Shown here piece after piece: positions 37,015 through 61,800 of a stretch of 64,000 bases of DNA. Both the position numbers and the translations under genes were made by a program. How positions within the stretch are numbered: position 1 is the stretch's first letter; each line of letters starts with the position of its first letter. The notes beneath the pieces were generated by a model, which had not been told where the DNA came from, ran no database searches, and saw nothing but the letters and a program-made list of their open reading frames with translations. The stretch lies in IMG/VR virus record IMGVR_UViG_3300048672_001051, positions 124,001 through 188,000 of that record. One strand, written 5' to 3'.

Positions 37015-37060
37015 AAGGGCTACCTTACATACTAAAAAAGAATGAACTACAACAACATGC

Positions 37061-37573: not shown

Positions 37574-37575
37574 GG

Positions 37576-38001: not shown

Positions 38002-38003
38002 GT

Positions 38004-38824: not shown

Positions 38825-38826
38825 CG

Positions 38827-42329: not shown

Positions 42330-42396
42330 GGGCTTATCCTCATAAGGGCGGATTGGTATGAAAGATTACTGCAACAACAACACAAACATGCTTTTA

Positions 42397-42849: not shown

Positions 42850-42859
42850 ACATGCTTAT

Positions 42860-44043: not shown

Positions 44044-44081
44044 ATTTAAATATTTCTCTAAATTATAATACTTAAATGCTT

Positions 44082-44546: not shown

Positions 44547-44547
44547 A

Positions 44548-44934: not shown

Positions 44935-44951
44935 ACTTTAAACCTGTAACT

Positions 44952-45305
44952 TTATAAATGTGCTAAATTTGTTATATTTAAAACTAGTCGTTTATTTATA
45001 TAAAAAGAATATTTTTTAGTATATTTTTCAAAGTAGCAGCCGTGTTGATTCCCACAAGTTAAAAAAGAATTTACATATAAACTTTTAGAAATTCCGAAAA
45101 TATAATTTTCGGAATGTTGATAAAATTCAACATTTCTCCATTTAGCAAAACCTGCTTTTTTAAAATGTTTTCTTAAATCTTTAAATAAATTAAGCCTGTA
45201 GAAACTATAACGCATTAAAATATCAAAATCTACACAAGAACCTACTTTAGCAGTTTTTATCAGGTCAGTATACAAATCAGTTAAGTATCTTTCGTTCATA
45301 CTCAT
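44952..45305 (-). CDS. LRxL-array paralog 3
   Basis: QHG...YIN...LAHL. Confidence 0.8.
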   Translation of the reverse strand: MSMNERYLTDLYTDLIKTAKVGSCVDFDILMRYSFYRLNLFKDLRKHFKKAGFAKWRNVEFYQHSENYIFGISKSLYVNSFLTCGNQHGCYFEKYTKKYSFYINKRLVLNITNLAHL

Positions 45306-45306
45306 A

Positions 45307-45708
45307 TTAAAGCTCTCTTAAATTTGAAATTTTTAATCTTTGATTATTTATTGCAAAATGTGTTTTTTGATATTCTGATGCAACTGCGCCCAAGAATCTG
45401 TTAGCCACAACAAAGCCAGTTCTCCTTGTAGTGCTAGTACAAAGACCTATTGCGTCACATTTAGTGGTTAAAAAACCTGACAGGCCAGAATCACTTTTAA
45501 ATTTACCAGCTAAAGGTTGTTTATAATCCCAAGCAATTGTTCGATTACCAGTTGTTTTGTTAAGATAAACTATAGACCGAGCATACTCCCAAAACATTTT
45601 TTTACTTTTAATTCCTAAAAAATATTTATTATTAAAGTACTTTTTATCCCAATTTTTTGTAACAAATTTACTAGCTTCTGGGTCGTGTTGCCAATCAAAT
45701 GTTTGCAT
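45307..45708 (-). CDS. LRxL-array paralog 4
   Basis: KMFWEYAR...LREL. Confidence 0.8.
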   Translation of the reverse strand: MQTFDWQHDPEASKFVTKNWDKKYFNNKYFLGIKSKKMFWEYARSIVYLNKTTGNRTIAWDYKQPLAGKFKSDSGLSGFLTTKCDAIGLCTSTTRRTGFVVANRFLGAVASEYQKTHFAINNQRLKISNLREL

Positions 45709-46106
45709 TATAAGTATCTCAAGTTAGTAATTGGTTTTTTGTATCCAGCTATGTAGTGCGTCAGCTGAGCGTTATAAACCTCTGCACCATGTTGTGCTGA
45801 ACTATTTAGATGGTACTTAATTCTATCACCACGAACTGATTTGACTAAACCAATTGTTTTTGCCTTAGCTGTAATAATATAGCTAATATCTGAGTTAGGT
45901 GAATACGCAATTCCACCTATATTATAAAAAATATCTAACAGATCATATCTTAGCATGTCTCTAACAAGAGAATAAAATTCTTTAGAATTTTTATTTCTAG
46001 TTGTATTTTTAAAAATTCCTATTAGTTGTGGAGTTACTTTTGAACAAGCACTAAAGCCATCTAAAATTTCTTGCGGTGTTGAATTATTAAAATCAATTTT
46101 TTTCAT
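45708..46106 (-). CDS. LRxL-array paralog 5
   Basis: QHG...YIAG...LRYL. Confidence 0.8.
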   Translation of the reverse strand: MKKIDFNNSTPQEILDGFSACSKVTPQLIGIFKNTTRNKNSKEFYSLVRDMLRYDLLDIFYNIGGIAYSPNSDISYIITAKAKTIGLVKSVRGDRIKYHLNSSAQHGAEVYNAQLTHYIAGYKKPITNLRYL

Positions 46107-46483
46107 AAATGTCTCAAATGTGTAGCTGCTACACGTTCACCATCAATATAAAGTTTTAAAGAATTTGCGACAGCACCATGACGGATGTCGTTAGCATAAA
46201 ATATTCTTAAATCGCCTTCCTCGAAAATCCCAAGCATGCCACTATTTTTTAAATAATAATTACAACCGTAAGTACTTCGTATAAAGCCATTTTTTAATTT
46301 AGCTAGTAACCTATGATTAAATAGAGAAGGGTATACTTGAATCGTATTTCTCAAGAATCCCCAAAAATATTTAGGATTTTTTTCGTATGAATATTTTATC
46401 AAATATTTATAATAAAGATTGGAAGTTCCTAAATGTTTTTTTATAAGTTTAATAGCATCAAAAACATCTTTAATTTCATGCAT
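46103..46483 (-). CDS. LRxL-array paralog 6
   Basis: KYFWGFLR...RHG...LRHL. Confidence 0.8.
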   Translation of the reverse strand: MHEIKDVFDAIKLIKKHLGTSNLYYKYLIKYSYEKNPKYFWGFLRNTIQVYPSLFNHRLLAKLKNGFIRSTYGCNYYLKNSGMLGIFEEGDLRIFYANDIRHGAVANSLKLYIDGERVAATHLRHL

Positions 46484-46484
46484 A

Positions 46485-46922
46485 TTACAAATACCTTAAA
46501 TGTGTACAGGATACAACTTGATCAGCAATATTAAAATAAGTTTCTACGTAAGAGTGATATGTGTCTGTCGCGTCGTCATAATCTTCTCCGCTGTAAATAG
46601 TAGCTCCATGCTCCCCAACTGAAGACTTAAACCACTGCGAATCTGAAGTGGTAATTAAGCCTCTGGTGCTATTGTGGTAAGAACTGTAGTAGTGTGTTGG
46701 TGGAGAATGTGTAGACTTGAGTGGATCATAACTCTCAGCCGGTCCAGAACTTACTGTTATAGTTTCGTTTTTAAATGTTCTTCTAATTTTTAAATATCTA
46801 ACATACCGCCAAAATGATTTTAGATCTTTTTCTAATAATAATTTTTCAAGCATTATTACTTCATGCTGATAATTTTTAATTGAGCTAAGCTCTTTAAGTA
46901 TTTCAAGAGGTGTACTATACAT
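46485..46922 (-). CDS. LRxL-array paralog 7
   Basis: KSFWRYVRY...EHG...LRYL. Confidence 0.8.
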   Translation of the reverse strand: MYSTPLEILKELSSIKNYQHEVIMLEKLLLEKDLKSFWRYVRYLKIRRTFKNETITVSSGPAESYDPLKSTHSPPTHYYSSYHNSTRGLITTSDSQWFKSSVGEHGATIYSGEDYDDATDTYHSYVETYFNIADQVVSCTHLRYL

Positions 46923-46942
46923 TATAAATCTCTAAATTTTAA

Positions 46943-47353
46943 TTACAAGTATCTTAAAGATGCCGTATCAATAGGTCTGTTGTTAATCCAAAAGCGTTTT
47001 GTTCTGTTAGGTTCATATAAACTCCCATGCACAGAACAACGTTCTTTGCAGAAATATTTCCTTTTTGTAGGTGATAAGTGAAAACCAATCAGTTCAAGAT
47101 TTTTTTTACGATAATAGATTTCACTATTAAAGTCTAAGCTGTTGACATATTTACCAGCACCTAACTCTTTTTTAAATTTTTTTAAAAATTTAGAATTCTG
47201 GGAGTTATAATTTTCTAAAAAATGCCTAATTCTTGGAATAATATTTTTTAAATCTGTAGAATTTTCAATTTTAATATTATTAAAATAATTAAAAAAAACA
47301 GTTTGTTCAGAAATTTTTTTAACAAATTTTCTAAATTTTTTTTCGGTTAACAT
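46943..47353 (-). CDS. LRxL-array paralog 8
   Basis: VHG...WIN...LRYL. Confidence 0.8.
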   Translation of the reverse strand: MLTEKKFRKFVKKISEQTVFFNYFNNIKIENSTDLKNIIPRIRHFLENYNSQNSKFLKKFKKELGAGKYVNSLDFNSEIYYRKKNLELIGFHLSPTKRKYFCKERCSVHGSLYEPNRTKRFWINNRPIDTASLRYL

Positions 47354-47370
47354 TATAAAGTCCTTAGTAG

Positions 47371-47772
47371 CTACAAACTTCTTAAAGAAGTTATTAATGT
47401 TTGGTGCCCATTTAGATATAAAGATATATCATTAAAATGTTTAGAAGCGCCGTGTTGTTTAGTATCTAGTAAAAAATACATATATTGCTTATTTTGAAAT
47501 ACTAATTTATGTCTACGATTTGGTGGACCTATAGTGTAAATAGCATAAGTAATTTTATTAACTTTTAAATATACGCTACAAACATAACCAAAACTGCTGT
47601 TAAAATTTGGTAATTTAATATACTTTCTTGATGCTAAAAATCTAACATAAGCCCAAAAGTCTTTAAGATTACCATTACTACTTAAAGACAGCATATAATT
47701 TGTTCTACTTCCAAGAGTATATTTATCAATTTCATTTAGTACAGTTTGAATTTTATTCATATTACAATTCAC
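47371..47772 (-). CDS. LRxL-array paralog 9
   Basis: KDFWAYVRF...QHG...LRSL. Confidence 0.8.
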   Translation of the reverse strand: MNCNMNKIQTVLNEIDKYTLGSRTNYMLSLSSNGNLKDFWAYVRFLASRKYIKLPNFNSSFGYVCSVYLKVNKITYAIYTIGPPNRRHKLVFQNKQYMYFLLDTKQHGASKHFNDISLYLNGHQTLITSLRSL

Positions 47773-48187
47773 TTAATTTTAAATTTGAAATATGTTTATC
47801 ATTAACATAAATTAGATAAGAAGTAGTACCAATCTGCGCCATACCGTGAGACTCATCCTGTTTTTTATAAGTTTTTTGATTTGACATACTAAGTAAACCA
47901 AAAGTATTGTCAGAACTATTAACATAACCTACAACTTTTAAGCTGTGCGGTGCTATAAGGTGTCCAGCAATTTTTAATTCTAAATCTTCTAGATTAAAAA
48001 AAGTGTAACGTTTATAAAATCGCAGAGTACCAAAAAATTTCATTAAATTTTTATAATTATTTAATGAAATTTTTTTCAAAGATATCAAAGCATTTGTTGC
48101 AAAGTATGAACTAACTACAGAATTTTGCTCTGCAATAGCCTCTATTTCACCTAATATTTGTAAACATGAATCTTTAGTTTCTAGCAT
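47762..48187 (-). CDS. LRxL-array paralog 10
   Basis: SHG...YVN...LSEL. Confidence 0.8.
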   Translation of the reverse strand: MLETKDSCLQILGEIEAIAEQNSVVSSYFATNALISLKKISLNNYKNLMKFFGTLRFYKRYTFFNLEDLELKIAGHLIAPHSLKVVGYVNSSDNTFGLLSMSNQKTYKKQDESHGMAQIGTTSYLIYVNDKHISNLKLSEL

Positions 48188-48202
48188 AATTTGTAATAAT
48201 CC

Positions 48203-48583
48203 TTAAAGATTTCTTAATGTTCTATATGCAGGTACCCTACAGCCTTCAAAATAGAAGGTTGTTATATTACCTGTCTTAGAGCAGCCGTGTATAACATTTT
48301 TAGAATAAAAATTAACTCTAATAAAAGATACTGAAAAACCTACACAACTATTATTACTTGTTAGGTAGTAACTTACTGTATTATCTGTTGAAATTATAGC
48401 ACCATAGCTTTTAGAGCACAGGTACATCTCAAATAAGCCTCTAGATATTTTTTTTAAATAGCGCACTTTAGCCCAAAAATACTTATATTCACCAGCATCT
48501 AAATGTTTTTTTAAAGTTTGGATACTCTTATCTTCGTATATATCTAAATCTATTATATATTTCAAAACATCTTGTGGGGTCAT
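48203..48583 (-). CDS. LRxL-array paralog 11
   Basis: KYFWAKVRY...IHG...LRNL. Confidence 0.8.
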   Translation of the reverse strand: MTPQDVLKYIIDLDIYEDKSIQTLKKHLDAGEYKYFWAKVRYLKKISRGLFEMYLCSKSYGAIISTDNTVSYYLTSNNSCVGFSVSFIRVNFYSKNVIHGCSKTGNITTFYFEGCRVPAYRTLRNL

Positions 48584-49065
48584 AAGTCTCTCAATCTTAA
48601 GTTTTTTGGGGCGTAGCAGTCTGGTTTAAATAAAAATTTAAATTTTATAGACTGGGCTTCGTATACAGTACCGTGTGACCCAGTAAATTTTGTTTGAAAA
48701 TGTTTAGAATATGTATGCACTACTAACCCTACGTTGTTTAAATTTTTACCATTTGCGTAATAACTACAGTTTTCTTTATAATAATATCCAGACATATTTA
48801 AATTAAGTCTAAAATAGGTTGGAAGTTGATAATTTATATATCTTGCATACCCCCAAAATTTTTTAAAATCTTTGTCCATAAAAAATTTTAAAAGTTTATC
48901 GTATTTTGCGCTTGATACCGTGTCTAGTGCATAAAAATATTGCAAAACTTTTAAAGGATTAACAATAACTGTGTAGTTAAAGCTTTTATAAAAAAGCATT
49001 AAAGTTTTTGTAGAATTATCATATATCTTAATATTTAAAATATAGTTTATAAGCTTATTAAACAT
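48580..49065 (-). CDS. LRxL-array paralog 12
   Basis: KKFWGYARY...SHG...LRDL; start uncertain. Confidence 0.8.
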   Translation of the reverse strand: MFNKLINYILNIKIYDNSTKTLMLFYKSFNYTVIVNPLKVLQYFYALDTVSSAKYDKLLKFFMDKDFKKFWGYARYINYQLPTYFRLNLNMSGYYYKENCSYYANGKNLNNVGLVVHTYSKHFQTKFTGSHGTVYEAQSIKFKFLFKPDCYAPKNLRLRDL

Positions 49066-49067
49066 AG

Positions 49068-49466
49068 TTATAAGTACCTTAAATTTGAAATATGTATAAG
49101 GTCACCGTCTAGATAATAAGCTACCTCAGAGGAGTTGTGCTGATATGTGCCGTGCCTTGAAGAGTTTTTTAAAAAATAATTAAAATAATATTTATTGCTT
49201 TTAACTAAGCCAATTAAATCTCTAGCTGTATTTATAGTGTATAGTGCGTTTTCACCCGGAGTGTTTGCACTCCCCGCTACATTATAAAAGTTAGTTAATT
49301 CATAAAAATGTACTATATATCTTAAATATTTTAAAGCTTCGTTAAACATTAAATTTTTAATATAGTCTTCAGCAGTTTTTATATGACTAAAGTGTATCTG
49401 AGGTATTTGTTTTAAAATTTTTAAAATCTGCTGAGGTTTTAAATTATTAAAATCTGTTGTAATCAT
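49068..49466 (-). CDS. LRxL-array paralog 13
   Basis: RHG...YLDG...LRYL. Confidence 0.8.
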   Translation of the reverse strand: MITTDFNNLKPQQILKILKQIPQIHFSHIKTAEDYIKNLMFNEALKYLRYIVHFYELTNFYNVAGSANTPGENALYTINTARDLIGLVKSNKYYFNYFLKNSSRHGTYQHNSSEVAYYLDGDLIHISNLRYL

Positions 49467-49834
49467 AAATTCCTTAAACCTGTATACGGTATTTTTTTAC
49501 CCATCAGATATAACCTTGTATTCTTGCGATCAACATCATCTTTAAAACTTCCATGTTGCATATTATTACTTGTAAAATATTTTAAATATTTATATTCTAA
49601 ATAGCCGACTTTATAAAAATCCTTAGAAGTGCCTATAAAAAAAGTATGCCAATTATTAATATCTCTAGTTTGACCGGTTTTAAATTTGCCTAGGTTTAGA
49701 TGAGGAATTAAATAATATCTAGCGCGCTCCCAAAATAATTTAATATCATTTGTAAGGTAAATTTTATTCAGTGCATTAAAAATTGAAGCATATTTTAAAT
49801 ATTCTAAAACTTTTTCTGGTGTGTCGTAAATCAT
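49463..49834 (-). CDS. LRxL-array paralog 14
   Basis: KLFWERARY...QHG...LRNL. Confidence 0.8.
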   Translation of the reverse strand: MIYDTPEKVLEYLKYASIFNALNKIYLTNDIKLFWERARYYLIPHLNLGKFKTGQTRDINNWHTFFIGTSKDFYKVGYLEYKYLKYFTSNNMQHGSFKDDVDRKNTRLYLMGKKIPYTGLRNL

Positions 49835-49846
49835 TTTATAAGCCTA

Positions 49847-50278
49847 TTAAAGATTTCTTAAAGTAGTTTTTAAACTTAACTTTTGTCCATAAATATAGTG
49901 AAAAGCTGAAGTAATTTTATAATATTCAAAAATGTTGATATCAAAAAATTGTCCATGAGGCAAACTTGCAGTGTAGTAACCTTTTTTTGTAGCCCTTTTA
50001 TAAAGTCCAAATCTTTCTGAGTTATTTTTAATATAATAGTTTGGTGCGTCATTATAGTCGAACGCTACATAACCTTTAGCAGTATGTGAATTTAAAAATT
50101 TTGCATCTAAGCGCCAACGCATAGTGTTAATATATCTAATATTATTCCAAAAATTATTTAAATCATCGTTAATAATATTTGTAACTAATTTTTCATAAGT
50201 TTTATTATTAAGATTATTTTTTATATATTTTAAAATATCAAATATTTCTCGAGCTTCTTCAACACTTACTTTACCCAT
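49847..50278 (-). CDS. LRxL-array paralog 15
   Basis: NNFWNNIRY...PHG...LRNL. Confidence 0.8.
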   Translation of the reverse strand: MGKVSVEEAREIFDILKYIKNNLNNKTYEKLVTNIINDDLNNFWNNIRYINTMRWRLDAKFLNSHTAKGYVAFDYNDAPNYYIKNNSERFGLYKRATKKGYYTASLPHGQFFDINIFEYYKITSAFHYIYGQKLSLKTTLRNL

Positions 50279-50279
50279 A

Positions 50280-50669
50280 TTATAATTCCTTTAAAGCTAC
50301 ATTTAAAATATTATTGTTAACCAACAACTCGTAACGTCGCCTATTTAGTTTTGTTGTTGCAGGTAAAACTCTACCATTCATAAAAGTTTTATGACTGCGG
50401 TTGGCTATTACGAGGCCAACTTTTAAGTTATTACTTTTTATGTAAAAAGTGCTTAACATACTATGAGTTATAACAAAAGCTTTACCGATGTTGTAAATAC
50501 CTAAATCAATTTTTAATTTATAATAGGATTTTATTCCACGCGCAAACATCCAAAATAACTTATCGTTTTTAGATAACAATTCACGTCTTAGCTTATAAAA
50601 TTCTAAATAAACTTGAGAATGATTTCTTAAAAGTTCATCCATAAATTCTTCAGGTGTGTCAAAAACCAT
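50280..50669 (-). CDS. LRxL-array paralog 16
   Basis: KLFWMFAR...LKEL. Confidence 0.8.
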   Translation of the reverse strand: MVFDTPEEFMDELLRNHSQVYLEFYKLRRELLSKNDKLFWMFARGIKSYYKLKIDLGIYNIGKAFVITHSMLSTFYIKSNNLKVGLVIANRSHKTFMNGRVLPATTKLNRRRYELLVNNNILNVALKEL

Positions 50670-50681
50670 TGCATAATGCTC

Positions 50682-51068
50682 CTATATATATCTTAAATTA
50701 TTTACATTCAAATTTGAACCATTAATAAAATATACACCTGAAACTTTACTAAATCCGTTTAGCATGTTTTTATTATAAAAAGAACTCGAAGAATCACGGT
50801 TGTGTAGTCCAAATTTTACAAAATTTTTTTTAAAATAGTAAAAATTTCTAAAAGAGTTGCTTGCAAAACGTCCGGTAGATATTTTAGAATTTTTACTGAC
50901 AGGTTCTAAATCTAAAATACAGTTATTAGTATATCGGATAATTTCCCAAAACTTTTTATAATCACCTTCGTTAATACTATTTAATAATCTTACACAGAAA
51001 GAGTCTTTAGCGCCTAAATTATTTTCAATATATTTAACTATATTAAATATTTCTACAACTTCAGTCAT
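50682..51068 (-). CDS. LRxL-array paralog 17
   Basis: KKFWEIIRY...FING...LRYI. Confidence 0.8.
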   Translation of the reverse strand: MTEVVEIFNIVKYIENNLGAKDSFCVRLLNSINEGDYKKFWEIIRYTNNCILDLEPVSKNSKISTGRFASNSFRNFYYFKKNFVKFGLHNRDSSSSFYNKNMLNGFSKVSGVYFINGSNLNVNNLRYI

Positions 51069-51070
51069 AA

Positions 51071-51445
51071 CTACAAATCTCTTAATTTTAAAAATTTTGG
51101 TAAAGGTTTATTATCAATAATAAACCTACCCCTAGTATTTTGTCCGTGATAGCAGTCATTTTTAAAATATTGTACTTTACGGTCATTATAATGTTTTCCA
51201 AATCTCTGTCGACGACTGTTTACATAAAATTTATCGTTAAATAAACTGTATTTTGCAAAACCAGCTTTACGTTTATCGGATAAAATTTTTAACTCTTGAG
51301 TAAATTCAATATGTCTACAAATTTTCCAAAAATCTTCTAAAGATTTTTGGAAAATAACTTCAAGAATTTTTTTAAGACCGGGAGATTTATTACCCAAGCT
51401 TTTTTGAAATTCTTTATATGTTTGAAATATTTCTTCATGATCCAT
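51071..51445 (-). CDS. LRxL-array paralog 18
   Basis: EDFWKICRH...YHG...LRDL. Confidence 0.8.
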   Translation of the reverse strand: MDHEEIFQTYKEFQKSLGNKSPGLKKILEVIFQKSLEDFWKICRHIEFTQELKILSDKRKAGFAKYSLFNDKFYVNSRRQRFGKHYNDRKVQYFKNDCYHGQNTRGRFIIDNKPLPKFLKLRDL

Positions 51446-51446
51446 T

Positions 51447-51872
51447 TTATATATACCTTAAGTTTTTTACAGATAGAGGTCGGCCATTAATAATAATTCC
51501 AGTTTCACTGCTAGTACCATGATACTGACTATTATTAAAAAAATTTAATTCGCCATTCCAGTTATCAAAACCTAAAATACAATGGTCTTTAACATAATTA
51601 GTTACAGTTAAAGTTTTACCAGAAATAGCTTTACCAGTAGGATATTTATTAAATATCCTACTTAGGTTTAGCTCTTCATTTAAATTTAAATTTAAATAAA
51701 TATGTCTAACTACACACCAAAACAAATTTATATTTGGAGGTTCAGCCAAAAGGCTTAGTCTTAATACTTCAACACTAACTTGTGTATCATAAGCTAAAGA
51801 ATCGTAACAGTTATCTTCAGCTATAAGATTATTAATATAGTTTAAAAATTCTTCACATTCTAATATGTCCAT
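51447..51872 (-). CDS. LRxL-array paralog 19
   Basis: LFWCVVRH...YHGT...LRYI. Confidence 0.8.
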   Translation of the reverse strand: MDILECEEFLNYINNLIAEDNCYDSLAYDTQVSVEVLRLSLLAEPPNINLFWCVVRHIYLNLNLNEELNLSRIFNKYPTGKAISGKTLTVTNYVKDHCILGFDNWNGELNFFNNSQYHGTSSETGIIINGRPLSVKNLRYI

Positions 51873-52279
51873 TATAAATACCTTAAGTTAGTAACATTGC
51901 ACGCGACAGCATTTACATAAAATCTTCTTGTGTGTTGACAATAACCGTGAACTTTACCTAAAAATCTAGCGCGGTACAAATAGCCTGATACTCCTGGGAG
52001 CCGAATAACGCCAAAAACTATAGAATTACTATTTACGTAAATTTTAAGGTCTTCAGCATGTCGGTTACAGACTCCAGCTTCATATTCATATAGTGTAAAA
52101 GTAAAATTACATAAATATTTAAAGTATCTTGCAACTTCCCAAAATCTTTTGAAAGACTTTTTAATTAAAAGATTTTCCAAATATTCATAATCACGGTGGC
52201 TTAAGTGTATAAATCTTTCTAAAACTTCAGTTGCTTTTTGAAACTCACTCATTCTTATAAATACCTTAAATTTGAACAT
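51872..52279 (-). CDS. LRxL-array paralog 20
   Basis: KRFWEVARY...VHGY...LRYL; likely start MSEFQ. Confidence 0.8.
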   Translation of the reverse strand: MFKFKVFIRMSEFQKATEVLERFIHLSHRDYEYLENLLIKKSFKRFWEVARYFKYLCNFTFTLYEYEAGVCNRHAEDLKIYVNSNSIVFGVIRLPGVSGYLYRARFLGKVHGYCQHTRRFYVNAVACNVTNLRYL

Positions 52280-52638
52280 TGAATATAAATATTTTTTATA
52301 TAAAATTCAGGGTTAGTCAGACTGCCTGAGCAGCCATGTAAAGTATCATTCACGTGAAATTGCTTTTTTTCGCAGTAGTTGTGTCGCCCAATTCTTTTAA
52401 AATTACTGTTAAAATAACAAAATTTTTTGTCTGTTAAATCTAGACTATATCCACTATTATATTTTCCAAAAGATACGTCGTACCTAAAACCGTGCTTAAT
52501 ATAACGAGCTACACTCCAAAATTTTTTTAAGTCTCCAGTTATTAAAATATTATTTAAAGTTTTTAATATACGTGTTGGGTACTTAAGTGTAGCCATATGG
52601 TCTATTATTACGTTTGGATCTTCAATAACTTGTAACAT
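52255..52638 (-). CDS. LRxL-array paralog 21
   Basis: KKFWSVARY...LHG...LRYL. Confidence 0.8.
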   Translation of the reverse strand: MLQVIEDPNVIIDHMATLKYPTRILKTLNNILITGDLKKFWSVARYIKHGFRYDVSFGKYNSGYSLDLTDKKFCYFNSNFKRIGRHNYCEKKQFHVNDTLHGCSGSLTNPEFYIKNIYIQCSNLRYL

Positions 52639-52639
52639 T

Positions 52640-53002
52640 TTAAAGCTCTCTTAATTTTAAATCGTAAATTGGCTTACCGTTAATTTTGAAACCTAAATAA
52701 CCTGTGCCATGCAATTTATCTTTATTTACAAACAAATGTCCAATTAAACATTTGTTTAGACCTACTCGCTCACTTTTTGAATTTACGTAAAAAGTTATTT
52801 GACTACTCATATTTTGTGAAAAACCAGAAGTGTGTGAATTTAACTTTAAGTGTGGACACAGACCTTTTAAAAACCTTGCATATATCCAAAAAAATTTAGT
52901 ATCACAACTTTTAACAATAGCTTTTAAATTTTTAAAAATAGTGTCATTAGACTCAAACTTAATTTCGTTTAAAAAAGTTAATATTTCTAATTCTTGATTC
53001 AT
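52640..53002 (-). CDS. LRxL-array paralog 22
   Basis: KFFWIYARF...LHGT...LREL. Confidence 0.8.
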   Translation of the reverse strand: MNQELEILTFLNEIKFESNDTIFKNLKAIVKSCDTKFFWIYARFLKGLCPHLKLNSHTSGFSQNMSSQITFYVNSKSERVGLNKCLIGHLFVNKDKLHGTGYLGFKINGKPIYDLKLREL

Positions 53003-53004
53003 GC

Positions 53005-53388
53005 TTATAAATGCCTTAAACTTGTTATAGGTCGACTATTACTTTTTATATAAAATTTTTTTGTAAAATTAGAATAGCCGTGTGCATAACCGTCAAGTCT
53101 AAATGTTTCACAAGATTTTCTCTCTAAAAGAAAAGTTTTACCAAATTTTCTGCCAGTACTATTTAAATAGTAAGCCCAATTATTATCTGATCTTTTGGCA
53201 AGACCAGACTCATATTCATATAATCCAATAGGAAGTCTTGATTCATATTTAATATATCTAGCTATTTCCCAAAATATTTTAAAGCATTTCTGCTTTAAAA
53301 TATAATTAAGATTAATGCAAATAATTTTGTAGCGCGCAAAATTTTCAAAATATTCTAAAACTCTGGTTGCTTTTTCAGATTCATTCAT
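53005..53388 (-). CDS. LRxL-array paralog 23
   Basis: KIFWEIARY...AHGY...LRHL. Confidence 0.8.
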   Translation of the reverse strand: MNESEKATRVLEYFENFARYKIICINLNYILKQKCFKIFWEIARYIKYESRLPIGLYEYESGLAKRSDNNWAYYLNSTGRKFGKTFLLERKSCETFRLDGYAHGYSNFTKKFYIKSNSRPITSLRHL

Positions 53389-53389
53389 A

Positions 53390-53788
53390 TTACAAGTACC
53401 TTAAGCTATTAACATGGTTAATAAAATTATTTAAAAAATATTTTTGCATAGTAAAATTATAACCGTGAAGTTTGTTTTGAATAGTGAAATAACGTTGAGG
53501 ATCTTTTCTATTGTCAACAACTTTACCTACTCGTCTGCTAATAGAATTAACATACGCATAGTAGGTATTTGAGCTGTTTATAGCTTTTCCAGCGCTATAT
53601 TCTGCTAAGTCTAAAGTTATTAAAGATTGATATTTTAATTTCAAATATCTTACATACTCCCAATAACGTTTAAAAATTCCTGTCTTTAAACCAAAATTAT
53701 ATTGCTCAGTTAAAAACTGCAAATTAAATTTCTCTTTAGAATTTTTAATTTGCATAAAAATATTTGCACCAAATGTCAAAACATTCAT
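53390..53788 (-). CDS. LRxL-array paralog 24
   Basis: KRYWEYVRY...LHGY...LRYL. Confidence 0.8.
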   Translation of the reverse strand: MNVLTFGANIFMQIKNSKEKFNLQFLTEQYNFGLKTGIFKRYWEYVRYLKLKYQSLITLDLAEYSAGKAINSSNTYYAYVNSISRRVGKVVDNRKDPQRYFTIQNKLHGYNFTMQKYFLNNFINHVNSLRYL

Positions 53789-53791
53789 CAG

Positions 53792-54226
53792 TTAAAGCTC
53801 TCTTAATTTTAAATTAAAAACATCTTCGTCATTAACACTAAATCCGAGACTATGAGTACCATGGCAGGTACTGTCTGTACAGTAGTACTTATGATCATCT
53901 GACGAGATATGCAAACCTATTGTAAAATTATCAGATTTTATATAACTAGTTGTTATAAGTTTTATCGGATCTATAATAGCACCTACTGGGTACTTATTAT
54001 AAAATTTATCTAAGTCTGCGTACCAACTAAATATATCATATGCATATCTGACTACGCCCCAAAAAAAGACTGAATTTAGAGGTTTTTGAGTTGCAATAAA
54101 ATCTAGCCTATTTACAATATCTATAAGTGTTGGTGAACACTCACCTTCAATACTTATTTTCACTATCTCTAAAACTTCTTTGAAGTATTTAACAACCTCT
54201 AAACACTCTTTTAATTTCAAATCCAT
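53792..54226 (-). CDS. LRxL-array paralog 25
   Basis: FFWGVVRY...CHGT...LREL. Confidence 0.8.
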   Translation of the reverse strand: MDLKLKECLEVVKYFKEVLEIVKISIEGECSPTLIDIVNRLDFIATQKPLNSVFFWGVVRYAYDIFSWYADLDKFYNKYPVGAIIDPIKLITTSYIKSDNFTIGLHISSDDHKYYCTDSTCHGTHSLGFSVNDEDVFNLKLREL

Positions 54227-54227
54227 A

Positions 54228-54620
54228 CTATAAATGCCTTAAATGCAGGTCAATCATGTCGCCATTAATAATAAAATAACTTTTATCGAGAGTATTACTT
54301 TGTCCATGGCTTGTACCTTTAAAACGAAAGCTGTGAGTTTTAATCCAGCCGGCTGCTACACAATTACCTAGTCTTATACCTGAAGTTGTACAGTAAAATT
54401 TTCCAAAAAATTTATTTGGTACTTGGCTAAAACCTTCAGAATATTTTTTTAAATCTACATTTTTCGTATGACAATTTTTTAAATAACGAGCTGCTTGCCA
54501 AAATACTTTAGCACTTCTTTCAATATTAATGACATTTAATAAAATTTTATAAGCTTCCTCATTTTCTTTTTTAAAGTCTGTTAAAACTTTAAAAATTTCT
54601 AACGCTTGAACTTCATTCAT
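54228..54620 (-). CDS. LRxL-array paralog 26
   Basis: KVFWQAARY...SHG...LRHL. Confidence 0.8.
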   Translation of the reverse strand: MNEVQALEIFKVLTDFKKENEEAYKILLNVINIERSAKVFWQAARYLKNCHTKNVDLKKYSEGFSQVPNKFFGKFYCTTSGIRLGNCVAAGWIKTHSFRFKGTSHGQSNTLDKSYFIINGDMIDLHLRHL

Positions 54621-54622
54621 AT

Positions 54623-55003
54623 TTACAGATACCTGAGAGATTTGATACGATTAGGAATACCGTTTAAATAATATTTTTTATCTATTTGGTCATAGCCGTG
54701 AAGCTCACCTTTAATATAAAAATATTCACGATTATCAAAAATAGCGCGACCAAATCTTTCGAGAGAGCTTGATAAATATCCTGGACGTCTAGACTCTGAA
54801 TTAAATATAGGTCCAGCAGTGTATTCTTTTAAATCTATTTCATGTCCAGCACACGCTTTAAAAAATCTCAGTATCATCCAGTATTTTTTAAAATTGGCAG
54901 TTTTTAATGCCAATTTAAATTCGTCTTTTAGTTCACTGCCTAGCTTATGACGCGTGTCCGGAATAAGTTGAAAAATATGCTGTGCAAATAGTTCTTCTCT
55001 CAT
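54623..55003 (-). CDS. LRxL-array paralog 27
   Basis: KKYWMILRF...LHGY...LRYL. Confidence 0.8.
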   Translation of the reverse strand: MREELFAQHIFQLIPDTRHKLGSELKDEFKLALKTANFKKYWMILRFFKACAGHEIDLKEYTAGPIFNSESRRPGYLSSSLERFGRAIFDNREYFYIKGELHGYDQIDKKYYLNGIPNRIKSLRYL

Positions 55004-55455
55004 TATAACTCTCTTAGTCTTAAAGTATTTTTTAGTGCGCGATCATTTATATTGAAACTAATACTATTATTAATACTGCAAGTCCCATGCTTCATATCTT
55101 TAAGTCTATAACTTGTACTCTCCAAGTAATAATCCAAACCTATTAGTTTAAAATCTGTTGTAAGATAACTTACAATTTTTAAATCTGTCGGTGATCTAGC
55201 CAAACCTGCAGGATATTTATTTAAAGTTTTGTCGAAATAATAAAAATAATTTGCCAAATTTAAATAGACATAACGGGTTATCTGCCAAAAACAAATAATA
55301 CTTGGACTAGGAGATTTAAAAATGTAGTCTAAAATTTTACAAGCAAGCGATAATTCATCAATATATTTTATACGAACATTTTTAAGCATTTCAGGCGTTT
55401 CTAAATATTCTTTAAAATATCTTAAGATTTTTTCAGAGTCTTCTAGTTGTGTCAT
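55003..55455 (-). CDS. LRxL-array paralog 28
   Basis: CFWQITRY...KHGT...LREL. Confidence 0.8.
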   Translation of the reverse strand: MTQLEDSEKILRYFKEYLETPEMLKNVRIKYIDELSLACKILDYIFKSPSPSIICFWQITRYVYLNLANYFYYFDKTLNKYPAGLARSPTDLKIVSYLTTDFKLIGLDYYLESTSYRLKDMKHGTCSINNSISFNINDRALKNTLRLREL

Positions 55456-55457
55456 AA

Positions 55458-55835
55458 TTACAAATCTCTCAGTTTTAAATTAGAATTTAAAACACAATTA
55501 TTTATTTTTAAAATAAATATTTTTGAAGCCTTATTAACATACACGCCGTGCATTCCACCGTTATTTTGAAAAAATTTTAAATTAATATTGTCATATTCGC
55601 CGAAAGACCTGAGATAACTATTAAAATAATATTTTCGATTAGTGCCAGGCGATACATACAAACCAGCTCTTGTTAGAAAATTTGGCCGTACTGGACGGCC
55701 AACATCATATTGTAATTCTCTTAAAACACCTAGGAATTTAGTTGTCTCACCGTCAGCTAACATTTTTAAACATAAAATATATGCATACGTATTTTTCGGA
55801 ATATTTTGTAATAAATCTAAAAATAATATTTTCAT
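55458..55835 (-). CDS. LRxL-array paralog 29
   Basis: YYFNS...MHG...LRDL. Confidence 0.8.
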   Translation of the reverse strand: MKILFLDLLQNIPKNTYAYILCLKMLADGETTKFLGVLRELQYDVGRPVRPNFLTRAGLYVSPGTNRKYYFNSYLRSFGEYDNINLKFFQNNGGMHGVYVNKASKIFILKINNCVLNSNLKLRDL

Positions 55836-56242
55836 TATAAATGCCTTAATTCTCTAGTTTTTACATCACGGCTGTTAATAATAAAAATAAAGCCTCTCTC
55901 AATGTCAAAAACCCCATGTTTTCGACTTTGTTTGTAATGCCTTCTAGCTACACTATTAAATTTAGCCATACCAATTACTTTGTCTTGTTTGTTTACATAA
56001 TAATGATAATTACCTAATATTGATGTAGCTAAGCCTGAACGCATGTGGCCTATATCTACACCCGAAGGCTTTATAGCTTTATGGTAATTATAATGTCTAA
56101 TAATCTCCCAAAATTTTTTAAAATTGTTAGTAGCAATTAAACTTTCTAATTTTCTAGTAGTTTTTTTGTCAATACTTGGTTGATTATACTCTTGTATAAT
56201 TTTTAAAATTTCATAAGGATTTGTAGTAATCATTTGCCACAC
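55835..56242 (-). CDS. LRxL-array paralog 30
   Basis: KKFWEIIRH...KHG...LRHL. Confidence 0.8.
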   Translation of the reverse strand: MWQMITTNPYEILKIIQEYNQPSIDKKTTRKLESLIATNNFKKFWEIIRHYNYHKAIKPSGVDIGHMRSGLATSILGNYHYYVNKQDKVIGMAKFNSVARRHYKQSRKHGVFDIERGFIFIINSRDVKTRELRHL

Positions 56243-56254
56243 CTTTGTTAATAT

Positions 56255-56674
56255 TTATAAATACCTTAGATTTTTTTTGTAAAAAAAATCATTATTAATA
56301 TACATGGTAGTAATATTATTCAGGAAAGCCATGCCGTGAAAATAATTATTTTTAAAAAATAAACATTCTTTATTAATACCAGTCTTGTGTAAACCTATTC
56401 TTAAGCCTAAGGAGTTAATATAAAAACTTTCATTGCCTGAGTTTAGGCTAACAAAACCGCTTGCCTTACTTCCTAGCGGTATTTTTAAATCATAATTTTG
56501 ATTAACATACCGACATACTTCCCAAAATTTTTTAGTATTATTTTGATAAATCAATTGTGATAGTATTGCAGGGTAATCTTTTAAAGTAATATACTTTTTT
56601 GTATATTTTTCAACTTCTTTTATAATTTCTAAGGGTTGCATTTCTAGAGATTCCTTAAAGACTTTGTTGGGCAT
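56255..56674 (-). CDS. LRxL-array paralog 31
   Basis: KKFWEVCRY...FHG...LRYL; likely start MQPLE. Confidence 0.8.
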   Translation of the reverse strand: MPNKVFKESLEMQPLEIIKEVEKYTKKYITLKDYPAILSQLIYQNNTKKFWEVCRYVNQNYDLKIPLGSKASGFVSLNSGNESFYINSLGLRIGLHKTGINKECLFFKNNYFHGMAFLNNITTMYINNDFFYKKNLRYL

Positions 56675-57039
56675 TCAGAATTATTAATATAATTTTGAAA
56701 ATAAGAATTCACAGTACGAACTCCGTGTAATTTTCTATTTTTAAAAAATAATTTTGCTTTATGATGGATTGATAAACCCACCACCTTACCTTTACTATTT
56801 AAATAGTAACTACTAGATAAGTTATGCATACAAGCTAAGCCCACTAAACGTGGGCCTGTAATATATTTTAAATCAAATTCATTTTTTAAATATCTGTACA
56901 GTTCCCAAAATTCTTTAACATTTTTAGTAGTACTTAAAAGATTGTAAACATAATGATTACAGTCAGCAGGATCTTTTAAAATTAATTTTAAAAGATCATA
57001 TATTTCAATAATTTCGTGTTGTTCAATTGTCTTAGTCAC
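56644..57039 (-). CDS. LRxL-array paralog 32
   Basis: KEFWELYRY...LHG...LRNL. Confidence 0.8.
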   Translation of the reverse strand: MTKTIEQHEIIEIYDLLKLILKDPADCNHYVYNLLSTTKNVKEFWELYRYLKNEFDLKYITGPRLVGLACMHNLSSSYYLNSKGKVVGLSIHHKAKLFFKNRKLHGVRTVNSYFQNYINNSECPTKSLRNL

Positions 57040-57408
57040 TTATAAATACCTTAAGCTCCGCCATGTCAGTAAATTGCCTTTAAGCCAGAATTTATGAAAT
57101 CTATCATCGCAACCATGCCTATAGCCTTGACAATAAAAAACTCTATCTCGAGAGTTTCTTGCAAATCCAAATTCTCTAGCTTCTCTATTAATATAACTTA
57201 AAAAATTAGAATTAGAGTTATAAATTTTACCAGCAGTATACTCACCTAAAATTAAATTAAACTTTTCTGTTTTTTTAATTCTACGAGCTACACTCCAAAA
57301 TTCTTTAAAATTTTGGTTAAGAAGACATTCTTGCAAAAGTCTAGTGTCAATATGGTAACTAAATCTTAAGTGGTCTAAAACATTTTTAGCTGATTCTAAT
57401 TCAGTCAT
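57040..57408 (-). CDS. LRxL-array paralog 33
   Basis: KEFWSVARR...RHG...LRYL. Confidence 0.8.
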   Translation of the reverse strand: MTELESAKNVLDHLRFSYHIDTRLLQECLLNQNFKEFWSVARRIKKTEKFNLILGEYTAGKIYNSNSNFLSYINREAREFGFARNSRDRVFYCQGYRHGCDDRFHKFWLKGNLLTWRSLRYL

Positions 57409-57409
57409 A

Positions 57410-57886
57410 TCATAAATACCTTAGCCTAGTCACATTACTTCGTATTCCATCAATATAAAAATCAGGTGCATTGAATCTTTTATATGCGCCATGTCTAATA
57501 TTATTTTTAAAATAACATGATTCATTATCAGACCTTTGACACAGACCTATCATGCCACTATTTTTTAATTTATAATAAAAATTATTATAACGCATAAACT
57601 TACCATTAAAATAATGTTGTAAGTTTATTTCAGGGCAATAAGAAGTACTAATATATTTTATTTTAGGCCAAAAATTTTTGGTATTATTGTCTGATAGAGC
57701 ATTTTTAAAAAGTCGCAAAATATCTACAGACTTTAAAGATCTTTGATAAACAGTTCTAACTATATCTTCACGAGTGTGACACTTTTTTAAAATTTCTTTT
57801 GTATTACAAGGATTGTAAAAAAAAGGAAAAGGACTTGGTGACAATATGGTTGAATAAGCCATAGACGTAATATCTGTAGGGTACAT
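57410..57886 (-). CDS. LRxL-array paralog 34
   Basis: KNFWPKIKY...RHG...YIDG...LRYL. Confidence 0.8.
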   Translation of the reverse strand: MYPTDITSMAYSTILSPSPFPFFYNPCNTKEILKKCHTREDIVRTVYQRSLKSVDILRLFKNALSDNNTKNFWPKIKYISTSYCPEINLQHYFNGKFMRYNNFYYKLKNSGMIGLCQRSDNESCYFKNNIRHGAYKRFNAPDFYIDGIRSNVTRLRYL

Positions 57887-57898
57887 AAAATATCCGTT

Positions 57899-58117
57899 TT
57901 AAAGTTGTAATAGTGTAATATTTTTTGAAAGTTTTTTACCAGCTATATATAATGTAATATTCTCTTGATCCTGTAGCGAAGAACCATGTCTTCCAGCTAT
58001 AGAGTTAAAGAAACTTTCAAAAGAGTCCATATATAACCCAACAATTCTTGCCAAACTATCTCTAAAATAATTGCCGTATTCGCCAGTATAGTAACCTGCA
58101 ACTTCAGATTTTTCCAT
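57899..58117 (-). CDS. LRxL-array paralog 35, lacking the N-terminal helical half
   Basis: 72 aa: GYY...IVG...RHG...LYIAG...LLQL. Confidence 0.7.
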   Translation of the reverse strand: MEKSEVAGYYTGEYGNYFRDSLARIVGLYMDSFESFFNSIAGRHGSSLQDQENITLYIAGKKLSKNITLLQL

Positions 58118-58276
58118 AAAAATGACTCGTTATTGTAAACAAAAAAGGGGTTTTAAGCTAAGATGCTAAAGCTTTGCACCCCTTAAAATAAGTATACTTA
58201 AATAATATTGCTTAAAAAAATGACTCGTTATTGTGATAGAAAAATTTTTTAAAAACAATTCTAACAACAATAACGA
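58118..58276. repeat. 19-bp direct repeat and partial inverted copy upstream of the array
   Basis: AAAAATGACTCGTTATTGT at 58118-58136 and 58216-58234; ACAATAACGA at 58267-58276. Confidence 0.75.
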
Positions 58277-58310
58277 TAAAAAATAAAAAGTCAAAAAAGC
58301 CTTATAGCTC

Positions 58311-58592
58311 TTAAAGCTTTAAAAAGAATTTATTAGAATTTTCTAAATTAGAAAGCAGATATACGTGCTTAATATTCAGAAAAGAGTCAATAAATGAATA
58401 ACCTAAAATATTATTTTGATTTGAAGTTTTAAGAACCTTCAAATCTTTAATAAGATTCAAATTATTAATGAAATAATTCAAATAACTATGATTACCTTGA
58501 ACATTTGGAAAATTAGAATATAAATCTTCTAAAATTTTCCGAGTAGTATTCAAGTTACGAGCACGTGTTAAAACATACCGCGGGCGAGTCAT
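58311..58592 (-). CDS. Hypothetical protein (start MTRPRY)
   Basis: GGAGG SD before ATG at 58592; 93 aa. Confidence 0.6.
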   Translation of the reverse strand: MTRPRYVLTRARNLNTTRKILEDLYSNFPNVQGNHSYLNYFINNLNLIKDLKVLKTSNQNNILGYSFIDSFLNIKHVYLLSNLENSNKFFLKL

Positions 58593-58770
58593 TAAAACCT
58601 CCACAAAAAGAAAGAATTTTTGATACGGTAAACCAGAGATTGGGGGATTGTTTGCACTAGTCCAAGGGGGTTAGACCAGAATTGCAAATAAAAGAACCAC
58701 TACTACATAAGTTTTCCAAGACTACTCTAACGATCTTCAATGATCATTGATGCTATAATGCTTTTTAATT

Positions 58771-58800
58771 GGTGTTTCGGAAGTTAACTTCCGAAACACC
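58771..58800. terminator. Perfect 30-bp palindrome after the RNAP stop
   Basis: GGTGTTTCGGAAGTT|AACTTCCGAAACACC. Confidence 0.65.
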
Positions 58801-58810
58801 GTGTTAAGGA

Positions 58811-61800
58811 TTACATACCTAAACTTTTCATTAGTGCATCTAAGTCATCTGGCGGAACGTTACCATTTGAATTAGCGCCTTCTTGAATGTTAAGGTCACT
58901 AAACTCTTCAGGATCTGCACAGAAAGCCTCAAATTTCTGACGGATCTCGAAAAGTTTTGAAACAAGTGAACCGAAATATGTGTTTTCAGAAATGAATGTC
59001 TCCCACATTTTCAATTCACTTTCGTCTACCGGAATTCGACCCTTATTGTATAAAGAGATAAAATTCCGACAACCTTTTAAAGCCTTCGAATGAGAACCCC
59101 AAGTGATAATAAACAAAAGTTTATTAATATCACCAAGGGTCATCCGATATTCAGGTTTTTGCAATTCAGCAATAATAATCTTACGATTTTCAGGCAATGC
59201 CATATTGCGCAGAAAGAACATTTCAAAGTCCTTACTACCATTTTTGGCATGCTTAATTGCTTCAATAACTTTTTCCTGAACCAAACGAGTATAAGCAAAA
59301 GAGAATTGTTTAAATTCTAAATCGCTAAGGGGCTGCAATAAAACAGGGTTAGGGACATTAGCAGTTTTGTATAAACCTTTATTTGCGACAAAGAATGCTT
59401 GATAACACTGCATTAAAGCAGTAGCAGTCCAAATGTCTAGGGTGGCAGGGCCAATATTAGCTTTAGCAACAGAGGCATTAAGCAAATACTGTTGATAGCA
59501 TGGAATGCCATTTTGAGGTGCCATTGGAACTTTGTTCAGTTTATAAACATGTTGACCAATAGGTAACAACTTGTTAGTTGTTTCATACTCACCATCAATA
59601 TACTCTTCATTCCAACATAATTCTTGCTCAAGAGGTTGAGGCCGAACAAATCGACGAAGAATTTCTTGACCAATTGGATTAGGAATAGCTAATGGTAGAG
59701 CATCACCATCACAATCACTTCGTGCTTCCAAAGCAATAGTAGGGCTGATTAACAGAATGTCACTATTGTACCGAGGATTCAAATACGCGTGCAAATCAAT
59801 ATTATGCACTGTCTTCAAATACATTCGGAACAAGTTAACATCCCAAATACGAGGTACTTGTAGCTGCATTTCCCAAAGTACAGGATTACGCACTGCTAAG
59901 CTACGAGGAACTTCGTTTAAAGCACGATCTACAGCTTGTTTGTCTAAAGTGCCATGCTCATTTAAACGCGCTAAGATGTCAATCTGAGAACTAACAAGAC
60001 GTTCCCAATCATCACCAAAGGCTTCATTCGAGATACGTTCAAATTTAGACTGACTCATAACAACAACAACATCAGGTGGTAGATAATGATCAACTACCTG
60101 TTTCATACCAAAGCCTTTCATACGAGGCTTGATAAGATGTTGAATTACCATTTGAGCGGCTTCTTCGTCTGAATAAAGCGTCGATTTAACTGCACGCAAA
60201 TACTCGTCTAAAGCATAAGACTGTTGTCGATTGTTGTCAGGCATTAACATGTTTCGGAAAACTTTATTATACCCTTTCAGGTATTTATAGTTTTCACGAA
60301 CAAGTCGCAAAATCTTAGACAATCGAATTAAAATGTCTGGATAATTTGTTTCGCCACTCATAAGTCGACCAGTAAACCGGTTCAACAAATAAGCACTAGG
60401 CATCCGGACACAAGGGCCGCCGAGAGAGCTGAAATCCAAATAAAAACCATTCGGATTATATTCAGCATTTAACAAGCGAGAATTAGATGGAAAAATTGCC
60501 TTCTTTGTTAATACAAAGTCGTCAGGTCCATACATAGGATTCTTACTAATTAAATCGGCAGGGGTGATAATTGGAAGTTCATCAACTTCTGAAAATACAG
60601 CGCGATCATCTGTTAGAATTTTAAACAATTCATAAACAGCTTTAATAGAATCAGGATCACGATAACTTTCAAAAATATGATTTGCAAGTTCAAGCGATAC
60701 GCCACCTTGGAATGTTAACATCTTCAAGGTTTCAAACATTACAGATTGAGGTTTCCAATCTGCGTAGATGTCAGTAATTTCAGTGTAGTTGATATAGACA
60801 AGTCCAATCTCAACGTTAACTTCATTACCAAAATTATCTACATATTTGTATTCAGGCAAAGACTGAGACGCAGCATTAATTTCAGCTTCATCCAATGAAT
60901 TTAAATAGCCTGAATTACCACGTTTAACACTGGGTTTATAGTAGCCCAGCTTAACAGCTAGAGCAGCTCGTGCTAAAACAATGGTGTTTGATGCAGCTTT
61001 AACAGCATTCATACCAGTAACAATGTCCGGTACGAGAAAATCTTTTTCATTCCAAGTGTTATCTGTCGAGGAATCTCCAAGATATTCAGAAGCATTTGGA
61101 TAACGTTCAGCAATAGCAGAGTCATCAAAAACATTCTTAAACATAATCTTACCAGTATTGGTAAGAACTTTAGTAACACCTTTAAGTCCGGTGCTACTTG
61201 TGATACGGCAGTTACCTGCACGGCAAATACCTTTAAAACGAATTTTAAAAGAATTTGCAATGCTTGTCGCATCAATAGAAAGTACAGTAATGGTTTTAAA
61301 ATTGTACAAGTCGATAGGACTTGACAAGTTATTCAACCCAACTGTAAATGTTTTAAAAGAAGGCTGATAAGTCTTGCCAGCTTCTACTAAAACTTCAGAA
61401 AAAATTTCTTCAATACTGAAAGAAACTTCTAAAGCTTGAGCTGCAATAGTTGCTGCAATTTCAATTTCACCGGAAACAAAACGTTTAGTGTCTGGGTCCA
61501 TTGGATGAAATACAATAAAAGCTTCACGTTGGCAATCGTCTTTACGAGTAAAGACGTCACCATTAATGATATAATCCTGTGTAAAAACAGAATTACTAGG
61601 GTTTTCAATCTTTAGATGCTCTCCTAAAGAATGAGTTTTAAGACGAGCAGCTAACGACTGTTTATTATCGAAAATAGTCAAGATCGAAGGAACTGTATCT
61701 CGAAGATTTTCAGAATAACCTGTGTTGCGAAACATAAAAGGCTGTTCACCTGTAAACAGGCTAACAGTAGCAGTTTTAGACATACTACCTTCAGATGTCA

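Follow-up and report, generated by a model that had tools for sequence, protein, structure and literature searches.

In prokaryotic genomes, a downstream gene has its Shine-Dalgarno (SD) sequence inside the upstream gene's coding region when the two are 1 to 4 nt apart and in the spacer when they are 9 to 15 nt apart, and spacers of 5 to 8 nt are avoided (Palleja et al. 2009, PMC2784483). Translational coupling by termination-reinitiation has been described at -4 and -1 overlaps (Huber et al. 2019, PMC6728339; Huber et al. 2023, PMC10666635), and a gap of about 20 nt almost abolishes it (Huber et al. 2023, PMC10666635). Bacillus phage G, with its approximately 35 copies of a zinc ribbon, is one example of the lineage-specific gene expansions known in jumbo phages (Iyer et al. 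2021, PMC7824862). In the present study, we analyzed a 64-kb stretch of DNA (hereafter, the window), bases 124001 to 188000 of the 229,656-bp IMG/VR virus record IMGVR_UViG_3300048672_001051, and describe a tandem array of 34 small paralogous genes in which the codons of a C-terminal peptide motif probably also serve as the SD sequence of the next gene, the motif itself being selected for the protein. The mechanism is already known from the studies on gene spacing and coupling cited above (PMC2784483, PMC6728339, PMC10666635), and the array is an unusually clear case of it. The array and the gene at its head are the following.

44082 to 57886, minus strand: tandem array of 34 paralogous genes encoding proteins of 117 to 161 amino acids (about 125), delimited from open reading frame (ORF) calls, alignment and a structure model.
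57899 to 58117, minus strand: degenerate first member of 72 amino acids, with the beta domain and its HG motif only, and the tail LLQL.

The array runs unbroken over about 14 kb of a single strand and extends beyond the range given in the preliminary description of this DNA. Four starts in the mechanical ORF list were shifted to the first ATG past the upstream stop, and the refined starts match independent public gene calls as well as an ortholog in a related phage. This relative, recovered from another sample, is represented by two contigs, L009 (7.7 kb, the array end and flanking genes) and L011 (1.9 kb, the array head); L011 has at the position of the degenerate first member a likewise shortened one (654 to 962), which ends in LKHL. 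The paralogs of the window align over their full length with a mean identity of about 20%, and the best full-length identity between any two of them is 37%. Conserved in the alignment are several glycines, the motifs FW..RY and FYING, a paired HG and, at the C-terminus, L-R-x-L (LRxL), which in the form L-[R/K]-x-[L/I] occurs in all 34 members.

The spacing of the genes is sharply bimodal. At 26 of the 33 array junctions the distance from stop to next start is -4 to +3 nt (tight junctions: three ATGA overlaps, four TAATG overlaps and 19 gaps of 0 to 3 nt, with +1/+2 as the commonest spacing), at seven it is 12 to 21 nt (loose junctions), and none falls between 4 and 11 nt. The gene ends quoted in the preliminary description (46485, 49068, 51872, 52255, 53005, 53390, 55835 and 57040) are all genuine; these low coordinates are those of the stop codons of minus-strand genes, and the last codons read TTA-AGG-(TAT/TAC/CAT)-(TTA/TTG)-TAA. 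The distance from the putative SD to the next ATG had been given as 8 to 10 nt; measured from the third base of the Arg codon, it is 8 to 12 nt at 23 of the 26 tight junctions and 5 nt at the three ATGA overlaps. Representative junctions are listed below; the two loose gaps missing from the list are treated with the orphan tails.

51872 to 51886, minus strand: tight junction with AGG, TTA-AGG-TAT-TTA-TAA, the stop overlapping the next ATG (gap -1).
50670 to 50681, minus strand: loose junction of 12 nt with its own AGGAG-type SD in the gap; the upstream tail uses AGA.
56234 to 56254, minus strand: loose gap.
49835 to 49846, minus strand: loose gap.
48188 to 48202, minus strand: loose gap.
44935 to 44951, minus strand: loose gap.

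All three spacing features of the pattern of Palleja et al. are seen in the array. What differs is that the putative SD sits here in one conserved C-terminal motif with 34 copies, that tight and loose junctions share this motif, which provides an internal control, and that probable remnants of lost genes appear to be retained as SD carriers. Stop/start overlaps and gaps of 0 to 3 nt are likewise shared with the coupled genes of Huber et al.; however, the commonest spacing in the array is +1/+2 and not -4/-1, and we infer coupling here from the sequence.

The choice of the Arg codon provides evidence for the SD role. Arg codons are distributed between the tails and the bodies of the array genes as follows.

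Tail Arg codons (n = 31): AGG 15, AGA 16, CGN 0.
Array body Arg codons (n = 202): AGG 23, AGA 102, CGN 77.

AGG thus makes up 48% of the Arg codons in the tails and 11% of those in the bodies, in which CGN accounts for 38%. The excess of AGG in the tails, a comparison suggested in the preliminary description, is significant against the array bodies (Fisher p = 5e-6) and against the rest of the genome (p = 4e-9). Furthermore, it depends on the spacing. Where the residue x is not Asp or Glu, tight junctions have AGG in 14 cases and AGA in two, whereas loose junctions have AGG in one and AGA in five (p = 0.004); both tight AGA cases are preceded by TTG, which gives GAGA. The last member, which has no array gene behind it, uses AGA, and the sole Lys-Glu tail at a tight junction is spelled AAG-GAA.

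The G residues so chosen lie where an SD would be expected in this phage. Its 251 non-array genes show a G-rich SD peak at -13 to -8, and the GG of the tail AGG falls at -13 to -9 at tight junctions, and nearer to the start at the three ATGA overlaps. Pairing was scored against the canonical CCUCC anti-SD core, which was assumed for the host. On this scale the mean duplex energy of the region from -20 to -4 is -4.04 kcal/mol at tight and -4.40 at loose junctions, compared with -3.07 for the non-array genes and -0.97 for random 17-mers. An SD-like sequence of AGGAG-, AAGGA- or AGG-type is present in all seven loose gaps. When the last six codons of each gene were re-encoded 2000 times with the array's own codon usage and scored for the same pairing, the observed sum over the tight junctions was -105.0 kcal/mol, compared with -43.5 +/- 9.1 in the simulations (z = -6.7, reached in 0 of 2000); at the junction at 51872, for example, the duplex energy is -3.9 kcal/mol and the mean of the synonymous recodings -0.8. 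At loose junctions the difference was not significant (-10.0 compared with -5.8 +/- 4.9 kcal/mol).

The codon rule of the window also holds in the related phage. Its genes flanking the array are 53 to 85% identical to those of the window, whereas the array members are mostly 28 to 37% identical, with one pair at 60%. At tight junctions of the relative, AGG is used in six of six cases, the loose Arg tails have AGA in three of three, and the loose Lys tails have AAA in three of three, compared with AAG-GAA at the one tight Lys junction of the window. With window and relative pooled, the association of AGG with junction tightness reaches p = 1.8e-5. Codon enrichment, dependence on tightness, recoding and the relative thus support the proposal that the tail doubles as the SD of the next gene.

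Several points weigh against this reading or narrow it. Two sequences had been put forward as the SD, TAAGG and AAGAGAG, and the codon signal is found for the former; the ten LR[D/E]L-type tails, which form the AAGAGAG class, have no synonymous-codon signal of their own and are not significant in the recoding, 0.18 to 0.77 of the simulations being at least as strong as the observed sequence. For LR[D/E]L, the amino acids together with the default codons account for the SD-likeness with no need of codon selection, and this class adds little to the recoding signal because AGA-GAN is already the default spelling. One gene, 56255 to 56641, departs from the rule, its tail having AGG at a distance of 21 nt from the next start. 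The paralogs are statistically non-independent, yet at about 20% identity synonymous sites should be saturated, and the replication set consists of one related phage on two short contigs.

At the same time, LRxL appears to be conserved for the protein, with the SD added on top by the choice of codons. Six different Leu codons are found at position -4 and five at -1, substitutions of R to K occur, and the motif is retained by the last member, by members ahead of a loose junction and by 13 of 13 members of the relative; the variation in Leu codons, the tolerance of Lys in place of Arg and the retention of the motif without an SD use indicate conservation at the protein level. Such selection had been raised in the preliminary description as a counterpoint, from the member at 44082 to 44546 with the next start given as 39 nt away; the motif is indeed kept there with a distant start, and the gap is 38 nt. 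The protein role of LRxL may be that of a structural cap or a common docking peptide.

The following course of events appears likely. With spacings of only -4 to +3 nt between most array genes, the final four or five codons of one gene would have to accommodate the SD for the downstream gene, and Leu-Arg spelled TTA-AGR already supplies UAAG, the 5' part of the SD consensus. At tight junctions, selection would then pick the rare AGG (giving UAAGG), AGA followed by an Asp or Glu codon starting with G, or AAG-GAA for Lys-Glu. A ribosome ending one gene would start the next at once, by SD-aided termination-reinitiation, along what may be a single transcript of the array, and free ribosomes could also enter, since the junctions would be the least structured parts of the mRNA. 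In the predictions, the mRNA folds least strongly at the starts (-2.5 compared with -4.6 kcal/mol overall), and for this reason the junction sites should be open and not masked; masking of the SD by mRNA structure was ruled out on the same grounds. At gaps of 12 to 21 nt, a separate SD in the gap would take over and the tail Arg would revert to the common AGA. The separate SDs in the loose gaps fit the near-loss of coupling at about 20 nt reported by Huber et al. (2023, PMC10666635). If a member is lost, only deletions that leave an SD to the next gene would survive, and the tail of the dead gene would persist as an orphan.

Candidates for such orphans are found in two of the loose gaps, where extra copies of the tail had been pointed out; both are present as written.

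46922 to 46942, minus strand: orphan tail B, L-K-F-R-D-L-stop, following the stop of the gene 46943 to 47353 in the same frame; its own stop overlaps the next ATG.
47353 to 47370, minus strand: orphan tail A, L-L-R-T-L-stop with AGG, following the TAG of the gene 47371 to 47760 in the same frame; its own stop overlaps the next ATG.

Tail-likeness was scored with matrices of 15 and 21 nt, the former built from the real tails. With the 15-nt matrix, orphans B and A score 15.3 and 12.4 bits, whereas only two of the 251 upstream regions of non-array genes reach 12 bits (Fisher p = 0.004), and the five other loose gaps are not tail-like. With the 21-nt matrix, orphan B scores 17.7 bits, the best value in the genome (229.6 kb) outside the real tails, and orphan A only 5.7 bits. 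Over 21 nt, orphan B has three mismatches to three real L[K/Q]LRDL tails and nine to the tail of its own upstream gene. Because it is of the LKLRDL class, with three against nine mismatches, it is best read as a relic of a lost member of that class and not as a copy of its neighbor's tail.

Gene remnants that still hold their tails are present in the related phage. On L009, positions 883 to 1006 hold a gutted paralog, in which about 16 head codons and about 17 tail codons (FFING...NLRHL) remain in different frames; its start lies 1 nt past the previous stop, and it leads into the next gene by an ATGA overlap. At 3407 to 3445 of the same contig, a mini-ORF of 12 codons with its tail kept lies between two tight stop/start signals. 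Such relics would keep the tail because a deletion removing it would leave the next gene without an SD. The reading of the orphans as scars of deleted genes is therefore supported for 46922 to 46942, by the class match and by the remnants on L009; for 47353 to 47370 it is plausible, the evidence for orphan A being weaker and its origin less certain. An alternative is that the orphans arose by short tandem duplication of the junction, or that they are ordinary SD regions with a chance resemblance to tails. The two share the frame of the upstream gene, at 18 and 21 nt past its stop, as a codon-wise duplication would give, an SD followed by an AT-rich spacer always looks somewhat like a tail, and the score of orphan A with the longer matrix is low. 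Nevertheless, the class of orphan B, unlike the adjacent tail, the tail-holding remnants of the relative, the rarity of equally tail-like upstream regions and the other five loose gaps speak against this explanation, which we consider unlikely, although orphan A may be a small duplication.

Read-through of stops into the in-frame orphans was also set aside: the tRNA genes of the phage include no suppressor tRNA, stop-codon usage is ordinary, and no genetic code other than the usual one was assumed. A further intermediate on L009 may be the member at 1007 to 1318 (region 1007 to 1405), which is broken by a frameshift within ten consecutive A; what remains of the protein, with its HG, FYID and NLRNL features, runs on in the +1 frame, and the next start is still adjacent to the NLRNL tail. 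Slippage, a pseudogene or an error of assembly could account for the break.

A further proposal was that the junction of about 15 bp is a DNA-level module, a recombination site at which cassettes are gained and lost by exchange and for which the motif is kept. The content of the array does differ strongly between the two phages, with 34 members in the window and about 16 on record in the relative while the flanking genes are 53 to 85% identical, and identical 15-mers recur at several junctions. For homologous exchange, however, 15 nt would be a short stretch. Recent duplicates are absent, given the best full-length identity of 37%, and there is no sign of recent unequal exchange or homogenization. 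The deletions that can be traced on L009, where indels ending at the motif had been anticipated, end inside gene bodies or a few codons from gene ends and not in the motif, and partial members exist in both phages (57899 to 58117; L011 654 to 962). An information profile of the junction shows signal at the L, R, L and stop codons only, and the spelling of Leu is variable, so that the identity over 15 nt is explained by LRxL, codon bias and selection for the SD. Two freshwater runs, both available as contigs, showed no joints for 46000 to 52000 of the window, which is a weak test and not firm as to copy-number variation; the second of these studies contains near-identical short contigs. No recombinase gene was found beside the array among the scanned neighbors, a scan that did not take in the genome as a whole. 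A recombination seam is not supported by these results, and we regard it as very improbable.

Nor do we give much credence to the possibility that AGG is chosen because, as a rare codon read slowly, it makes the ribosome pause just ahead of the stop, in aid of folding or reinitiation, and not because it pairs with 16S rRNA. AGG, with 167 of 2125, is indeed rarer than all but one of the other Arg codons in the phage, and tRNA-Arg(UCU) is its only tRNA-Arg. However, Lys shows the same dependence on the junction, AAG-GAA when tight and AAA when loose, and AAG is no case of a rare codon; furthermore, the positions of the G residues coincide with the genome-wide SD peak, and the loose gaps contain SD-like sequences of their own. 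Finally, the view that the tail is conserved for the protein only, its excess of AGG being ancestral inheritance or chance, can draw on the retention of LRxL where no SD is needed (the last member, loose junctions, the relative), but it is hardly tenable, as an identity of about 20% should have randomized third positions and yet CGN is absent from all 31 tail Arg codons with AGG at 48%, AGG tracks tightness in the array and again in the relative, the recoding gives z = -6.7, and the similarity table shows no split into AGG and AGA clades.

We next turn to the proteins encoded by the array. A model built from the 34-sequence alignment (pLDDT 88.7) predicts an N-terminal three-helix bundle followed by seven short strands arranged in beta-hairpins and a C-terminal turn. 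The closest structures in BFVD and the ESM-Atlas are mostly MORN-repeat proteins of giant viruses, phages and bacteria, and the matches are weak (TM-score 0.46 to 0.49); those of the beta domain alone are weak as well, with Z of at most 3.8 against the PDB and a Foldseek E value of 0.03 or worse. The Pfam MORN models (PF02493 and PF07661) gave no match in ten members scanned at E up to 1, and Pfam and PHROGs assigned no family to array members. Fold searches with the whole model and with the C-terminal domain, a sequence-profile search of the PDB and a protein atlas returned only weak MORN- or CROP-like neighbors and a generic three-helix bundle. Because of the weak structural scores and the absence of Pfam and PHROG matches, the predicted C-terminal domain is better called MORN-like than MORN. 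Like the MORN and MORN_2 (YwqK-like) proteins, which are expanded in giant viruses, the C-terminal half of the array proteins is predicted to be a stack of beta-hairpins and has a G...HG...NG pattern; the N-terminal three-helix bundle and the LRxL tail, however, are not MORN features.

A profile of the 34 members was searched against 1.84 billion representative proteins and gave 47 hits: 33 of the 34 members of the array itself, 13 proteins on L009 and L011, from one other sample, and one weak hit, an unrelated 734-residue protein. Because the search returned, besides this weak hit, only this array and one relative, the family appears to be almost private to this phage lineage. As in phage G, one small domain family has thus reached about 35 copies in one jumbo phage lineage; the fold is different from that of the zinc ribbons, the copies stand in one unbroken tandem run, and the junctions are probably coupled. 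We also observed that the members at 57410 to 57886 and 46103 to 46483 are 46% identical over their C-terminal 54 residues only, with far lower identity in the N-terminal domain, which hints at domain-level mosaicism or uneven divergence in the family.

Upstream of the array lies a non-coding region shared with the relative.

58118 to 58310, minus strand: conserved non-coding leader, aligned with L011 497 to 654.

This leader is far better conserved between the two phages than the array genes are. It contains a 14-nt motif twice (58123 to 58136 and 58221 to 58234), by pattern search the sole two copies in the genome, and the second copy ends just ahead of the ATG of the degenerate first member. 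The leader may serve the entire array as its promoter or operator. Promoter-like sites in 42000 to 60000 are in slight excess (124, compared with 105.8 +/- 8.2 in shuffled sequence), and terminator-like sites in the same region are at chance level.

The window derives from a freshwater jumbo phage that is a distant relative of Acinetobacter phage ME3, and the runs that contain it are freshwater metagenomes only, with no RNA run among them. Its surroundings are jumbo-phage-like, with an intein-containing helicase, TROVE/VWA, NAMPT and TerC-like proteins, a tRNA synthetase, an RNA ligase and tRNAs; the RNA ligase and the class I tRNA synthetase are among the genes of the array neighborhood. The features concerned are the following.

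7161 to 24900, minus strand: 15 to 16 scattered tRNA genes.
21292 to 23829, minus strand: PIF1-type helicase split by an intein with a LAGLIDADG endonuclease domain.
25273 to 40481, minus strand: tellurite-resistance-like and NAD-salvage module with TROVE/VWA, a TerC/DUF475 membrane protein and nicotinamide phosphoribosyltransferase.
58811 to 62434, minus strand: protein of 1207 amino acids, with 31% identity to hypothetical proteins encoded by the Acinetobacter jumbo phage vB_AbaM_ME3.

The tRNA set covers the codons of the tails, with tRNA-Arg(UCU), tRNA-Leu(UAA), tRNA-Leu(UAG) and those for Tyr, Asp and Glu, and an Rfam scan found tRNAs only and no other RNA family. A class I (Trp/Tyr) tRNA synthetase sits with the module at 25273 to 40481, which is partly syntenic with the Ter module described in ME3 (PMC7824862). 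For the 1207-residue protein, sequence searches of Pfam, PHROG and the PDB gave no match, and its relatives in the phage collection are Acinetobacter phage records only (ME3 and PBAB25). In ME3 the homologous gene is divided into two parts that flank an endonuclease gene, and no such array lies downstream of it. The protein contains an S-D-C-D-G-D stretch, which we take to be reminiscent of the metal-binding loop of two-barrel RNA polymerases, as a resemblance only.

For the 34 proteins together, one may speculate that they are a diversified library of small binders that plug into one phage or host machine through LRxL, are made in fixed proportion from a coupled chain of 14 kb, and turn over quickly as a set between related phages, as a host-range or counter-defense repertoire. 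We consider this rather doubtful; if it were true, the tail would be an address label of the protein and a coupling signal of the mRNA together. The less ordinary part of the finding is the family itself, with its 34 copies, fast divergence and nearly private distribution in a freshwater jumbo phage. The array amounts to a natural experiment in dual coding, in which one peptide motif has been written 34 times, with and without SD duty, and the choice of codons follows the need for an SD almost perfectly. It also suggests that the last codons of a dead gene can persist since its neighbor depends on them, which is relevant to the annotation of short "non-coding" gaps in phage operons.

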